From sequence record NC_035464.1: a stretch of DNA of 9,780 nucleotides. The stretch is one strand, 5' to 3'. This document shows positions 3,244-6,750 of the stretch, one piece after another (the stretch's first letter is position 1; each line of letters starts with the position of its first letter). The translations under genes and the position numbers were made by a program. The notes under the pieces were generated by a model. It made no database searches. It was not told the DNA's origin and saw nothing but the letters and a program-made list of their open reading frames with translations.

Positions 3244-3366
3244 ATGATTGAACTGGGGGTGGGTACGTACTACCCCATGGTACAATACCGTCTTACCAGT
3301 CTCCCAGAGGAACAGATAAAGAGGGCGTATAAAATCATAAGGGATGAGGTGAAAACGTGGCCATAG
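3244..3366 (+). CDS. Small hypothetical protein, 40 aa (MIELGVGTYYPMVQYRLTSLPEEQIKRAYKIIRDEVKTWP); not in the ORF track
   Basis: Translated by hand. It fills the gap between two genes, looks helical and amphipathic, overlaps the next GTG start and contains that gene's RBS. The true start may lie upstream (see findings). Confidence 0.7.
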   Translation: MIELGVGTYYPMVQYRLTSLPEEQIKRAYKIIRDEVKTWP

Positions 3367-3674
3367 TCCATGAGGAGGTAACGTTTCATACTGAAGTGGA
3401 TGATGAGAGCGTAGAGGCAATCAGGAGGATCATAAGGGACCAGTGTGGAGAAAACCCAAAGCCTGAATGTTGGGGCCCGTTGGTGTGGTCCATGTTCGAC
3501 AGCGTGGCCCGTGCCATCCCGTGCCCAAAGTGCCGAGGGGAGGCACTGGAATTCCTGACCTTTTTGCATGATTTAATTAACATACAGAAGGGTAGTGCTA
3601 TATACAATACCCCGCAATTCCTTAGGAAGAAAAAGGAAGAGATACTGAGCCTACTCAGGACCCGAGGGATATAA
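3357..3674 (+). CDS. Miniature Erv1/Alr-like (poxvirus E10-type) sulfhydryl oxidase, 105 aa
   Basis: GTG start after GAGGTGA (3346-3352). Motifs NPKPECWGPLVW, IPCPKCR and FLHDLINIQKG match the Erv signature WGxxxW...PCxxC...HNxVNxxxG. The CDS is well supported; the function is inferred (about 0.65). Confidence 0.9.
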   Translation: MAIVHEEVTFHTEVDDESVEAIRRIIRDQCGENPKPECWGPLVWSMFDSVARAIPCPKCRGEALEFLTFLHDLINIQKGSAIYNTPQFLRKKKEEILSLLRTRGI

Positions 3675-3682
3675 TATAAATA
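3670..3682 (+). promoter_or_regulatory. TATA box of the structural-gene operon
   Basis: TATAATATAAATA in an otherwise GC-rich genome, with TATAAA at 3675-3680, 38 nt before ATG 3713. Confidence 0.65.
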
Positions 3683-3712
3683 GGAGAACTGATGTAACTA
3701 TGGTAGAGAGCC

Positions 3713-3979
3713 ATGGTGTCCAATAGAGAACTCGCCAAAAGGCTCAGCCAGTCGGCCAGGGAGGCGTGGAATTCAGAGGAGGGCATGAGGATCAGAGAGG
3801 AGCTAAGTGCAGACTCTGCCTCCTATGGGGCGTGTCTGAGGAGAGTCATGGAAAGTGGAGGAGGCAGTCGTGGTTACAAGGATTGCGCGAGGAGGTCAGG
3901 AATAGGTACGGCGTTTGCCAGTGTCTGGGGGTCTACAAAGGCCTATGGTAGGCCGATGGTGGAAGTAGTAGCGAGGTGA
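3713..3979 (+). CDS. Basic, helical 88-aa protein; candidate genome-coating nucleoprotein
   Basis: ATG start; first gene behind a strong TATA box; Arg/Ser/Gly-rich with two Cys. The function is inferred from position and charge. Confidence 0.88.
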   Translation: MVSNRELAKRLSQSAREAWNSEEGMRIREELSADSASYGACLRRVMESGGGSRGYKDCARRSGIGTAFASVWGSTKAYGRPMVEVVAR

Positions 3980-3984
3980 CCTAG

Positions 3985-4314
3985 GTGGACTTCTCCAGAC
4001 AAACGTGGGAGGGGCCAGTGGCTGTTGGCGTCGGCGGGTACGTGTGGAACAAGGTAAAGGGGAACACGCAAGTTCAGACGTTCGTGAGCAAGGTAGGTGG
4101 CAAGACGAATGCAGGGCTCATCTTAGTGGCCCTAGGCGTAGTCGCTAAGGCATACAAACCCGAGTCAGAAGCCATGAATATACTGGGGTACCTGTTGGCG
4201 GGACTCGGTGCGGGGGCACTCGGTGACGACTTGCCCGCCACTGGGTCACAGGCGACGTTTACGAATAAAAGCCCAGAGTACCCTAGTCCAGTTAGTGGGG
4301 TGAACGTGCTGTGA
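3985..4314 (+). CDS. Membrane protein, 109 aa (candidate virion internal-membrane protein)
   Basis: GTG after RBS GAGGTGA (3973-3979); hydrophobic GxxxG-rich segments (AGLILVALGVVA; ILGYLLAGLGAGALG). Confidence 0.88.
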   Translation: MDFSRQTWEGPVAVGVGGYVWNKVKGNTQVQTFVSKVGGKTNAGLILVALGVVAKAYKPESEAMNILGYLLAGLGAGALGDDLPATGSQATFTNKSPEYPSPVSGVNVL

Positions 4315-4724
4315 AACTCTACATGAAAACGATTGAGATCCAATATTCCATCCCTGCGAGTGCACCATCCGAGTCACAGGTGCCTGGAGTGTTCATAGAC
4401 CTCTCCAGTGGCACTAGCCAAGGCCAACTCCAAGTCCCCGTGAACCAAGAGTGGGTCATCATAGACGTCTACAACAGGGGGTCTCAGGACGTCGGCGTAG
4501 ATGCCGTGGCGACGTTCACTAAGAACAGCGTCTCCAACGTCCTCACTACGGACCCAGTCTCATCCCTGAACATCTCGAACCCATCCAGACCAACCTACCC
4601 GCCAATACAGATGGCCCCAGGGACGATATTGACCTCCAAAGTCACTACGCTCACGTCCAACGGCACTAGTGCGGCCGTGGATAACCTATTCATAAAGGTC
4701 AAGATCATAGACTACTCGCAGTAA
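4311..4724 (+). CDS. Beta-rich 137-aa protein; candidate single jelly-roll major capsid protein
   Basis: GTGA-coupled start after GGGGTGA (4297-4303); alternative ATG 4323. Alternating hydrophobic beta patterns throughout (TIEIQYSI, EWVIIDVYN, DAVATFTK, TILTSKVTT, LFIKVKII), no TM segment, last gene of a strongly promoted operon. The MCP call is inference (about 0.5). Confidence 0.9.
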   Translation: MKLYMKTIEIQYSIPASAPSESQVPGVFIDLSSGTSQGQLQVPVNQEWVIIDVYNRGSQDVGVDAVATFTKNSVSNVLTTDPVSSLNISNPSRPTYPPIQMAPGTILTSKVTTLTSNGTSAAVDNLFIKVKIIDYSQ

Positions 4725-4743: not shown

Positions 4744-4750
4744 TTTTTTA
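4744..4750 (+). terminator. T6 tract ending the core structural operon; possible promoter element for 4773
   Basis: TTTTTTA lies 19 nt after the TAA at 4724 and 29 nt before ATG 4773. Confidence 0.6.
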
Positions 4751-4772: not shown

Positions 4773-5450
4773 ATGGCATGCCAGACTATACAAGACCTAT
4801 CGATAGGCCCGTACACCATAGAATCGGGTCAGGTCTGTGTGGAGGGCACTACCTCAGGGACGGCTAGCCTGACTATGAAAGTGGGGCCGTTCACGTACAC
4901 CAAGACTATCCCATGGGGGGCGGTAAACCCCCAACAGACGTTGGGTACGTCCTCAGGGAGGGTCTACCTTATCGGGACGAACCCCCTGTCGTCACTCCTA
5001 GTGGACGACGTCCTAACGGTGGCTGAGTATGCACAGAAAGTGGCGTCGTACTTAGGGTACAGCGGTTCGTTTTCCATAGTGAACGTGGGTTTGACGAATG
5101 GCTCAGACTGCAACGACTGTGTAGTTTACGTGGACTACGTCGCCTCTTCTCCTCCTCTTGCGGTAGCCCTAGTGATCGCTCTCGTGATCGTTTTCGTCAT
5201 AGCTATCGTATTGGGTATCTATTTCATTTCGGCCGCGATAGAGAGTTTTCAGCCCGCACCTCCCACGCCCCCTCCTCCAGGGAGTCCCCCGTCCCTGTAC
5301 CAACAGTACTACCAGGAGTACGCCCAGTATTTGAAGGAGAAACAAACGGCCTCAATCACGGGAGGGGTATTCGGCACGTCCACGGCCCTAGTGGCGTTAG
5401 GGATAGCCATTTTAGCCTTCTTGGCGTTTACTGACCATGGTGGGAAGTGA
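4773..5450 (+). CDS. Membrane-anchored virion protein, 225 aa (beta-rich N-domain, two TM helices, poly-Pro linker)
   Basis: ATG start; TMs LAVALVIALVIVFVIAIVLGIYFI and TALVALGIAILAFLAF; PAPPTPPPPGSPP linker; four Cys including CNDC. Confidence 0.92.
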   Translation: MACQTIQDLSIGPYTIESGQVCVEGTTSGTASLTMKVGPFTYTKTIPWGAVNPQQTLGTSSGRVYLIGTNPLSSLLVDDVLTVAEYAQKVASYLGYSGSFSIVNVGLTNGSDCNDCVVYVDYVASSPPLAVALVIALVIVFVIAIVLGIYFISAAIESFQPAPPTPPPPGSPPSLYQQYYQEYAQYLKEKQTASITGGVFGTSTALVALGIAILAFLAFTDHGGK

Positions 5451-5734
5451 TGGTGTACCAGATATACGACGGGCAATACACGGTTTACCCCGTGGGAAAC
5501 CCCCAGGTCACGCTCATCAGGGTAGACGTAGCGGGGAGAGTGAAAATCATGATCCTCCCCACGGTGTCAGAGGCCCTTCAACTGACCCTGAACGGAAACT
5601 CAGGTTACCTGAACCAGGGAAACGTCCTCTCGGCGGGAAATTGGTACGAGTTCGAATACGTGAGTTGTGGGAAAGACATCATAAGCATAAATGGGACACA
5701 GCAAGGAGTTTACCTTAGGGTGATAGTGTATTGA
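5447..5734 (+). CDS. Small beta-rich protein, about 95 aa; candidate penton/vertex protein
   Basis: GTGA-coupled start (or ATG 5450); all-beta pattern (TLIRVDV, VKIMIL, LQLTLN, WYEFEYV, IISIN, VYLRVIVY); lies directly upstream of the spike candidate. Confidence 0.85.
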   Translation: MMVYQIYDGQYTVYPVGNPQVTLIRVDVAGRVKIMILPTVSEALQLTLNGNSGYLNQGNVLSAGNWYEFEYVSCGKDIISINGTQQGVYLRVIVY

Positions 5735-6750
5735 TTAGAGGTCAGATACACAAACTCTCCAAGTGGGAGTTAAGGGACTACGCTAGGACACTAGTCCCCG
5801 TCTTTGAATCCCACGAGGTGGACGGCACTAGGGACATGAAAATCGTGGACGCCGTGATATCGTACGCCATGAAAGGGACGAAACCCTGGCTGAGGAGGGG
5901 GTCAGCCCTCCAGGGCTTTATAGGGCCTAGGATGTCTGTCCTCGAGGGTTACCTCATCTTCCCCACGTCAGGTATTGAGCCCGTGACCATCCAGTCCACT
6001 ACCCTAGAGAACTCCTACCTAGTCCTAGATATCGTGGGGGCAGGTGGAGGAGGTGGTGGTGGAGGTGGTGGGAACACCACGGCCACTACCCCGTTCGCCC
6101 AGGGTGGTGGAGGTGGGGGAGACGGTGGCCGTCTCATTATCAGGACCCAGGGGCCACTAGTCTCTGGGACCCAGTTCACAGCCCAACTGGGAGGGCCAGG
6201 TGGGACAGGTGGAGGGACAGGTGCCACAGGGACACCAGGTTCAGCACCAAACGGGGCGACTCAGGTAGTCCTAGGGAACGGCACACTCACGCTCAGTGTG
6301 TCAGGTGCGTCAGCCCCTACCATGCCCCCGACAGCAGGAGGACAGGAGGCAGGAGGGTCAGGAGGTGCAGGAGGGTCAGCAGTGTTCACGTACTTGCCAA
6401 CGACGCCCATATTCTCGGCCATACAGTTGAACCCAAGGACGTCCTTCCTCTCGAATTACTCGGGCGTACTGGACCAGGGTATTGGTGGAGACGGCGTTGG
6501 GTCTGAGTACTTCACCCTGTCCAACGCCACGCCTATATTCGTCTCGACGCCACAAGGAACGAGGGTCACTGGGGGAAGCCCAGGGGGCACAGGCACCTCA
6601 GCCACGGCGAACGTCCCCTCTGGGGCAATCCCGCTCAGGGGGTCAGGTGCAGGAGGAGGAGGGGGACAGAACTCCTCTTCCGCCCCAACAGCGGGAGGGA
6701 ACGGCGGGTCTGGAGGGCCTGGACCTATCATTATCTTGGTGATAGGATGA
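5731..6750 (+). CDS. Glycine-rich spike/turret (receptor-binding) protein, 339 aa
   Basis: TTGA-coupled TTG start after GGGTGA (5718-5723). The pattern hDhVGAGGGGG...GGGGGxGG...GGxGGxGG...GSGAGGGGG...GGNGGSG resembles the glycine-rich domains of phage tail and spike proteins. Confidence 0.9.
   Translation: MIRGQIHKLSKWELRDYARTLVPVFESHEVDGTRDMKIVDAVISYAMKGTKPWLRRGSALQGFIGPRMSVLEGYLIFPTSGIEPVTIQSTTLENSYLVLDIVGAGGGGGGGGGGNTTATTPFAQGGGGGGDGGRLIIRTQGPLVSGTQFTAQLGGPGGTGGGTGATGTPGSAPNGATQVVLGNGTLTLSVSGASAPTMPPTAGGQEAGGSGGAGGSAVFTYLPTTPIFSAIQLNPRTSFLSNYSGVLDQGIGGDGVGSEYFTLSNATPIFVSTPQGTRVTGGSPGGTGTSATANVPSGAIPLRGSGAGGGGGQNSSSAPTAGGNGGSGGPGPIIILVIG

Follow-up and report, generated by a model that had tools for sequence, protein, structure and literature searches.

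The 9,780-nucleotide stretch of DNA analysed here (the window) matches Metallosphaera turreted icosahedral virus 1 (MTIV1; MF443783 / NC_035464) with 100% identity over its full length and represents the entire published genome of this virus, which, according to the record, comes from an acidic Yellowstone hot spring. The genome is linear, its inverted terminal repeats (ITRs) of 318 nt are 99% complementary, and every long open reading frame (ORF) lies on the plus strand. Our subject is the three-gene unit at 3713-4724, where b88, a109 and c137 correspond to gp10, gp11 and gp12 of NC_035464, each annotated in the record as a virion structural protein. An earlier reading of this DNA, the original prediction, held that the unit is bounded by a TATA box and a T6 tract and encodes a basic helical protein of 88 aa, a GxxxG membrane protein of 109 aa and an all-beta protein of 137 aa. 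It proposed that the virus, lacking an ATPase, is built like the portoglobovirus Sulfolobus polyhedral virus 1 (SPV1), with a nucleoprotein-coated genome, an internal membrane and one small single jelly-roll capsid protein. The three ORFs, the A/T-rich box upstream and the T6 tract downstream are all in place. The features are:

3668-3683, plus strand: A/T-rich TATA-like box, GATATAATATAAATAG, which overlaps the c105 stop codon and ends 30 nt 5' of the b88 ATG.
3713-3979, plus strand: b88 (gp10), 88 aa, helical and moderately basic, with two invariant cysteines (from annotation, hhalign and AlphaFold2).
3975-3979, plus strand: GGTGA Shine-Dalgarno-like motif, which overlaps the b88 stop codon and lies 5 nt 5' of the a109 GTG.
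3985-4314, plus strand: a109 (gp11), 109 aa, virion protein and candidate membrane or subcapsomer protein (from annotation, motif and transitive matches).
4299-4303, plus strand: GGTGA Shine-Dalgarno-like motif, 7 nt 5' of the c137 GTG.
4311-4724, plus strand: c137 (gp12), 137 aa, predicted capsid protein with a VP4-type (SPV1) single jelly roll (from profiles, AlphaFold2, Foldseek and VIA).
4744-4749, plus strand: T6 tract, 20 nt 3' of the c137 stop, candidate archaeal oligo-T terminator.
5450-5734, plus strand: b94 (gp14), small beta-rich protein outside the three-gene unit, candidate vertex or penton protein (from a family profile match).

The box and the two GGTGA motifs were read directly from the sequence, as was the T6 tract, for which conservation adds to the evidence. 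First genes of Sulfolobales operons are usually near-leaderless behind a TATA box, and GGTGA is the ribosome-binding motif typical for the internal genes of such operons. Both internal genes of the unit, a109 and c137, start with GTG and each has GGTGA in front of it. The TATA-like box is near-identical in the related loci L004, L005 and L006, and most of the distant relatives have an A/T-rich box ~30-40 nt 5' of the first gene. The plus strand of MTIV1 carries six T6 runs, four of them just 3' of stop codons (those of c109, c137, a368 and a73, with the runs at 2339, 4744, 8484 and 9348), which is the pattern expected if oligo-T tracts are archaeal terminators dividing the genome into operons, and which suggests a split into about five transcription units. 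In all 10 related loci, from MTIV-like through to SPV-like, a T6 or T7 follows the capsid gene immediately. From these patterns we infer that the box acts as the promoter of the three-gene unit and the tract at 4744-4749 as its terminator.

By profile and model evidence c137 is a homologue of the SPV1 capsid protein VP4, with a predicted single jelly-roll fold. Taken alone, the c137 sequence matches the Pfam family PF25646 (SPV1_VP4) with an E-value of 7e-5 and 22.9 bits, under the 27-bit gathering threshold, and phmmer against all PDB sequences matches a single chain, VP4 of 6OJ0 (E 2e-4). An exhaustive profile search over 1.84 billion representatives, with a cut-off of E<=1e-3, delineated a c137 family of 88 clusters (at 50% identity), nearly all of whose proteins are 130-165 aa long. 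A profile of 80 of these sequences, none of them from SPV1, identifies 6OJ0 VP4 in the PDB at E 5.7e-19, aligned to VP4 residues 23-163, the remaining matches being noise. Conversely, PF25646 matches 35 of the 80 family members (E<=0.01, best 112 bits), and precomputed PF25646 matches exist for most of the close c137 relatives.

The structural comparison leads to the same protein. The AlphaFold2 model of c137 is confident (mean predicted local distance difference test, pLDDT, 95.2) and all-beta with eight strands, as the original prediction had expected, and the fold is of the VP4 type. Foldseek returned 6OJ0 as the sole match under E 1e-3 (E 2e-9, template modelling (TM) score 0.75), with the capsid proteins of the sphaerolipoviruses SH1 and HCIV-1 next at ~5e-3. 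VIA, an aligner independent of Foldseek, superimposed 134 of the 137 residues on SPV1 VP4 with Z 17.6 and a root mean square deviation of 1.9 Å, the second-best match having Z 7.7. In the BFVD library of viral structures the best non-self match is again SPV1 Capsid protein VP4 (E 2.8e-10). The lower-ranked VIA matches include XepA and P23-77 VP17, both of which also appear among the structural matches of SPV1 VP4 itself, as reported in PMC8812541. With 137 aa against 181, c137 is a minimal VP4, without ~22 N-terminal and ~15 C-terminal residues. Separately, four large proteins recovered by the c137 profile (P0095, P0126, P0133 and P0139; 429-2328 aa, with 4-8 partial matches each) were considered as cellular ancestors of the fold and rejected, as they are PKD/Ig-repeat or repetitive proteins and their matches are probably spurious.

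Two other groups of icosahedral viruses resemble MTIV in outline. STIV (Sulfolobus turreted icosahedral virus, Turriviridae) has the same turreted icosahedral morphology, an internal membrane, a Sulfolobales host and a shared name, and its particle is built from a double jelly-roll capsid protein and its genome encodes a packaging ATPase. The STIV structural-protein entry 4ind matches c137 with Z 6.8, amid many jelly rolls, and the VIA matches of c137 include no double jelly-roll capsid protein that rises above background. Since c137 is a single jelly roll, MTIV is not a turrivirus despite its name. The Helvetiavirae/Sphaerolipoviridae (P23-77, SH1, HCIV-1, HHIV-2) share with MTIV single jelly-roll capsids on an internal membrane. 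The original prediction had named sphaerolipovirus capsid proteins beside those of SPV1 as structures to compare with c137, and it is SPV1 that the comparison selects, while the Helvetiavirae capsids stay at the jelly-roll background (Foldseek E 4e-3 to 8e-3, VIA Z 6.1-7.4). In these viruses the capsid contains two jelly-roll proteins of different kinds, and the packaging ATPase is of the FtsK-HerA type (PMC8812541); MTIV has neither.

What is then encoded in front of the capsid gene? b88 is a virion protein by annotation, so that it belongs to the particle as had been foreseen; its helical nature is borne out by the model and its basic character holds in moderate form, with an isoelectric point of 9.8, a net charge of +5 and an R+K+N content of 19%. 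Word searches find homologues in MTIV-like sequences only, where the net charge is conserved at +3 to +5, R+K+N at 18-21%, and W19, C41, L42, C58 and W72 are invariant. The link to more distant viruses comes through gene order. P0129 and P0116, the members of the c137 family nearest to true VP4 and with full-length PF25646 matches, are encoded on contigs with a 79-aa gene, then a 117-124-aa gene, then the VP4-type gene, the same layout as the 88, 109 and 137 aa of MTIV. In hhalign the b88 family aligns with the 79-aa proteins of contigs L007 and L008 with 97.4% probability (E 1.5e-11), with all invariant residues matched; hmmsearch with the b88 family finds the 79-aa proteins at 7e-11, and jackhmmer arrives at the same two proteins. 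The cysteine pair is thus invariant from MTIV to the SPV-like contigs.

The AlphaFold2 model of b88 (pLDDT 74) is all-alpha, its helices spanning 4-19, 22-48, 52-62 and 64-72, plus a disordered tail, i.e. 4-5 predicted helices against the five reported for VP1. Its best non-self match in BFVD is SPV1 Nucleocapsid VP1 (78 aa), with 20% identity over 82 columns and E 0.56. The SEV1 paper describes SPV1 VP1 as five-helical, with 22% R+K+N, and sets the minimum length of such nucleocapsid proteins at 78 aa; the R+K+N content of archaeal nucleocapsid proteins, VP1 included, is given there as 17-22% (PMC12273771). Other searches with b88 were negative: it has no Pfam family and no match among PDB sequences, and the ESM Atlas yielded nothing either by features or by shape. 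Of the viral-contig scans, one returned only close MTIV relatives, and the one for P0116 found nothing. Overall, b88 is probably a homologue of VP1 and, a step less securely, it is fairly likely to coat the viral DNA.

The alternative for this gene is that c137 is indeed of the VP4 type, while b88, stapled by a disulfide, is a minor structural, scaffold or matrix protein and another viral or host protein condenses the DNA. Such a role would agree with a net charge of just +5, with the weakness of the direct structural match to VP1 and with the comparison of the model to solved structures, where no fold, and specifically no DNA-binding fold, was matched (best Z 5.2). It would also suit the two invariant cysteines in a gene directly downstream of c105, of which b88 is possibly a substrate. 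However, the homology to the syntenic 79-aa family, the nucleocapsid name of the top non-self viral match, and an R+K+N content inside the nucleocapsid range all favour a DNA-coating protein; the positional counterparts of b88 in L010 and L011 are strongly basic, and there is no better DNA-binding candidate among the MTIV virion proteins. We consider this alternative unlikely and continue with b88 as a probable VP1-type protein. C41 and C58 lie ~7 residues on either side of the loop that links two antiparallel helices of the model, and an intramolecular disulfide between them is therefore plausible. As a separate observation, c105 (3357-3674), directly upstream of b88, has a weak match to Pox_E10 (E 0.16), and a viral disulfide system might act on b88.

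The assignment of the middle gene depends on intermediates. a109 contains two weakly hydrophobic Gly/Ala-rich segments, an invariant motif GYxLAGxGAGxL with D-(x)-P after it, and a tail of variable sequence rich in Pro/Ser/Thr/Gln. jackhmmer started from a109 stalled at E 0.0047, and the connection appeared only when searching from the SPV-like side or with L013 included. The 108-aa protein of L010 is clearly a relative of the SPV-like middle genes (E 1.5e-16); used as a single sequence in phmmer, it also matches the a109 homologue of MTIV3 (E 3.4e-5). A profile of three SPV-like middle genes, searched against 1396 six-frame ORFs, matched the a109 homologues of 'SPV3' (3.6e-4) and MTIV3 (6.9e-4) and nothing else up to E 10. 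('SPV3' is the virus of OQ473816, 'Sulfolobus polyhedral virus 3' in GenBank and STIV3 in PMC10101205.) With L013 added as an intermediate, hhalign with the a109 family reaches a probability of 89.6% (E 1.9e-6), and 20 shuffled-query controls for this link gave zero matches. Common to a109 and the SPV-like middle proteins are the two Gly/Ala-rich segments, a 'zipper plus D-P(P)' motif and the variable low-complexity tail. Transitivity together with synteny thus makes homology of a109 to the SPV-like middle gene probable. SPV1 has subcapsomer proteins between membrane and shell (ICTV, the international committee for virus taxonomy), and guided by this description we would place a109 at the membrane or in a subcapsomer position.

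Conservation extends to the order of the genes. MTIV3 and 'SPV3' have their genes in the order c105-b88-a109-c137-c225-b94, as in MTIV1, the three-gene core is also present in L007, L008, L010 and L011, and in the short related contigs the capsid gene still has at least the middle gene in front of it. The first proteins of L010 and L011 (L010:1133-1381 and L011:802-996) show no detectable similarity to b88, and they too have two cysteines and are basic, with net charges of +11 (82 aa) and +8 (64 aa), respectively; they may have diverged extremely, or the nucleocapsid position may have undergone a non-orthologous replacement. Across the family of 88 protein clusters the same order recurs: a small basic two-cysteine protein, a small hydrophobic protein, the capsid protein and an oligo-T tract.

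Beyond the three genes, the family profile of b94 matches a 118-aa protein of L007 (L007:5797-6153) with E 6e-12, and the two proteins share the motif GN-L-x-x-x-WY-x-x-E/D. Neither b94, nor the L007 protein, nor their joint profile matched any PDB sequence, and none of the ESM Atlas feature matches of b94 is assigned to a family.

These data bear on the possibility that the likeness concerns the capsid gene alone, acquired by horizontal transfer, with MTIV-like viruses and portogloboviruses otherwise unrelated and the adjacency of the three genes coincidental. Only three of the 21 MTIV protein families (b88, c137 and b94) have clearly significant counterparts in SPV-like contigs, the genomes differ in type (linear with ITRs, 9.8 kb, against circular, 20 kb), and so does the capsid geometry, all as transfer of one gene would allow. 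Nevertheless, two to three adjacent genes are homologous and identically ordered in divergent loci, which also conserve the terminator tract, and b94, a structural gene outside the triad, is also common to both groups. The shared adjacent genes and b94 therefore represent a virion module, a marker of the virus lineage, and not one transferred gene; of the explanations considered, we give transfer of the capsid gene the least credence.

The conserved block has a possible extension. c225 (4773-5450), the gene after c137, has a strong transmembrane segment (Kyte-Doolittle 3.6) and weak profile matches to the genes at the same position in L008 (4326-5168; 1e-4) and L010 (2179-2700; 3e-3), and the conserved module may be one gene longer, through c225.

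We consider it likely that positions 3713-4724 hold the core operon for the MTIV1 virion, and that portoglobovirus-like viruses carry the same module. Several observations count against this view. The structural match of b88 to SPV1 VP1 is non-significant by itself (TM score 0.34-0.37 at the E-value given above), b88 is only moderately basic, and the 79-aa family is equated with VP1 through length, rank and synteny. For a109, the best 19-residue Kyte-Doolittle mean is 1.29, under the usual 1.6 for a transmembrane helix, so that of the expected GxxxG membrane protein the GxxxG stands, in a single copy, while the membrane protein is a candidate assignment; a direct hhalign comparison of the a109 family with the SPV-like middle genes is also non-significant (E 0.41). 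MTIV1 has no homologue of the penton protein VP10 detectable by sequence, and an unrecognised novel ATPase or a host enzyme would be compatible with an ATPase-free scan. The prediction of a b88 homodimer, with a score of 0.00, is evidence neither way. Taken together with the results above, the SPV1-like architecture of the original prediction is supported, through homology for c137 and b88 and less strongly for the middle gene. It requires correction in one respect: SPV1 has not one jelly-roll capsid protein but two, with VP4 forming the hexamers and VP10 the pentons.

The expected absence of an ATPase agrees with what we find. A Pfam scan of the 21 MTIV1 ORFs identified no ATPase or NTPase family, and a motif scan in six frames no usable Walker A. 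The sole P-loop-like string in an annotated protein comes at the very end of c134, in its final 8 residues, which leaves no space downstream for the fold, and none of the four ORFs of >=188 aa matches an NTPase family. SPV1 is likewise reported without a packaging ATPase (PMC8812541), and its virion is described as a VP1-DNA nucleoprotein coil within an inner membrane and a VP4/VP10 shell (ICTV). For the MTIVs an inner membrane is cited, and lipids were detected in MTIV3 virions (PMC10101205).

Given that no recognisable packaging ATPase is encoded in the genome, assembly would most likely proceed as proposed for SPV1, that is by nucleoprotein-first co-assembly. Transcription of the unit would probably start from the TATA-like box and end at the conserved oligo-T tract, with a109 and c137 translated from their GGTGA motifs. 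b88, as a VP1-type helical protein stapled by its cysteine pair, would coat and condense the linear 9.8-kb dsDNA. a109, as a hydrophobic protein with a Gly/Ala zipper, would sit at or in the internal lipid layer, its flexible tail reaching to the shell, and c137 would form the hexameric capsomers of the icosahedral shell. In this order of events b88 would first condense the DNA, and the membrane and c137 capsomers would then enclose the core, without any pumping of DNA into an empty capsid.

Alternatively, a preformed shell might be filled by an unrecognised viral ATPase or one recruited from the host, with the structural proteins still SPV1-like. The absence of an ATPase rests on the Pfam and motif scans, and most early genes (c118 to c153) are without an assigned function, which leaves room for such an enzyme. 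On the other hand, no ORF has a P-loop with space for an ATPase fold, and reports on SPV1, with its homologous capsid protein, describe a nucleoprotein core and no packaging ATPase. We regard the filling of a preformed shell as very improbable and retain nucleoprotein-first co-assembly as the model.

How close, then, are the two viruses? Like MTIV, SPV1 (Portogloboviridae; PDB 6OJ0) has a homologous single jelly-roll capsid protein, probably a small helical two-cysteine protein of the VP1 type encoded nearby (b88 in MTIV, with its weak VP1 match), no packaging ATPase, an icosahedral shell over a lipid layer and a Sulfolobales host. The differences are in the genome, linear, 9.78 kb and with 318-nt ITRs in MTIV but circular and 20,222 bp in SPV1; in the capsid protein, which in MTIV lacks both terminal extensions of VP4; and in the lattice, which is T=43 in SPV1, while that of MTIV is said to be T=28. 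Reviews that cite the primary MTIV paper mention a 22-Å reconstruction, a new architecture and 42 turret-like projections. Because its genome is linear, 9.8 kb and flanked by ITRs as opposed to a 20-kb circle, MTIV falls outside Portogloboviridae as now defined, but it would work like a portoglobovirus, with the same virion module. MTIV2, MTIV3, MTIV4 and 'SPV3' also have linear genomes with ITRs and c137 homologues 48-60% identical to that of MTIV1, and differ from it in size (12.7-18 kb) and in their accessory genes; they are the same virus group and provide evidence of conservation, not a new comparison.

The genes themselves were already known, and what appears to be new is the assignment of fold and role and the tie to portogloboviruses. 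The literature searched, including a June 2026 preprint on MTIV4, contains no link of MTIV to SPV1 or to the jelly-roll fold, although the primary papers lay outside the search and earlier publication is possible. Databases do hold hints of the link, in the GenBank name of 'SPV3' and in the precomputed Pfam tags on many c137 relatives. [quoted passage not shown]

We lean, by a little, towards a broader view, in which MTIV-like viruses and portogloboviruses belong, as branches, to a single large lineage of archaeal viruses that is mostly uncultured, has at least 88 capsid clusters and is defined by an operon of small basic two-cysteine nucleocapsid protein, small hydrophobic Gly/Ala-zipper protein, VP4-type single jelly-roll capsid protein and oligo-T tract. 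Nucleoprotein-first, ATPase-free assembly would in that case be ancestral for single jelly-roll dsDNA viruses and c137 near to the minimal capsid jelly roll. If this is true, the lineage covers linear genomes with ITRs as well as circular ones, from 9.8 to 20 kb, with varied triangulation numbers and no packaging ATPase. If the two viruses have in common a homologous capsid protein, a homologous nucleocapsid-type protein and their gene order, one virion module would serve both genome forms and different capsid lattices, portogloboviruses would gain cultured relatives with a genome of half the size, and the metagenomic lineage would be far larger than its cultured members suggest. MTIV would then offer a compact and tractable model for motor-free assembly of a shell and membrane on a protein-coated genome.

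Two further observations concern 'SPV3' and a virion protein downstream of the unit. The 18-kb sequence of 'SPV3' (L003, OQ473816) contains two diverged copies of the structural block, at ~1.4-5.6 kb and 12.1-16.4 kb, with homologues of c109, c153, c105, b88, a109, c137, c225 and b94; this reflects either genuine duplication or the joining of two related viruses during assembly of the sequence. In MTIV1, the virion protein a339 (5731-6750) contains long glycine runs and matches Gly_rich_2 exactly at the Pfam gathering threshold (24.3 bits), and is a possible component of the turrets or fibres.

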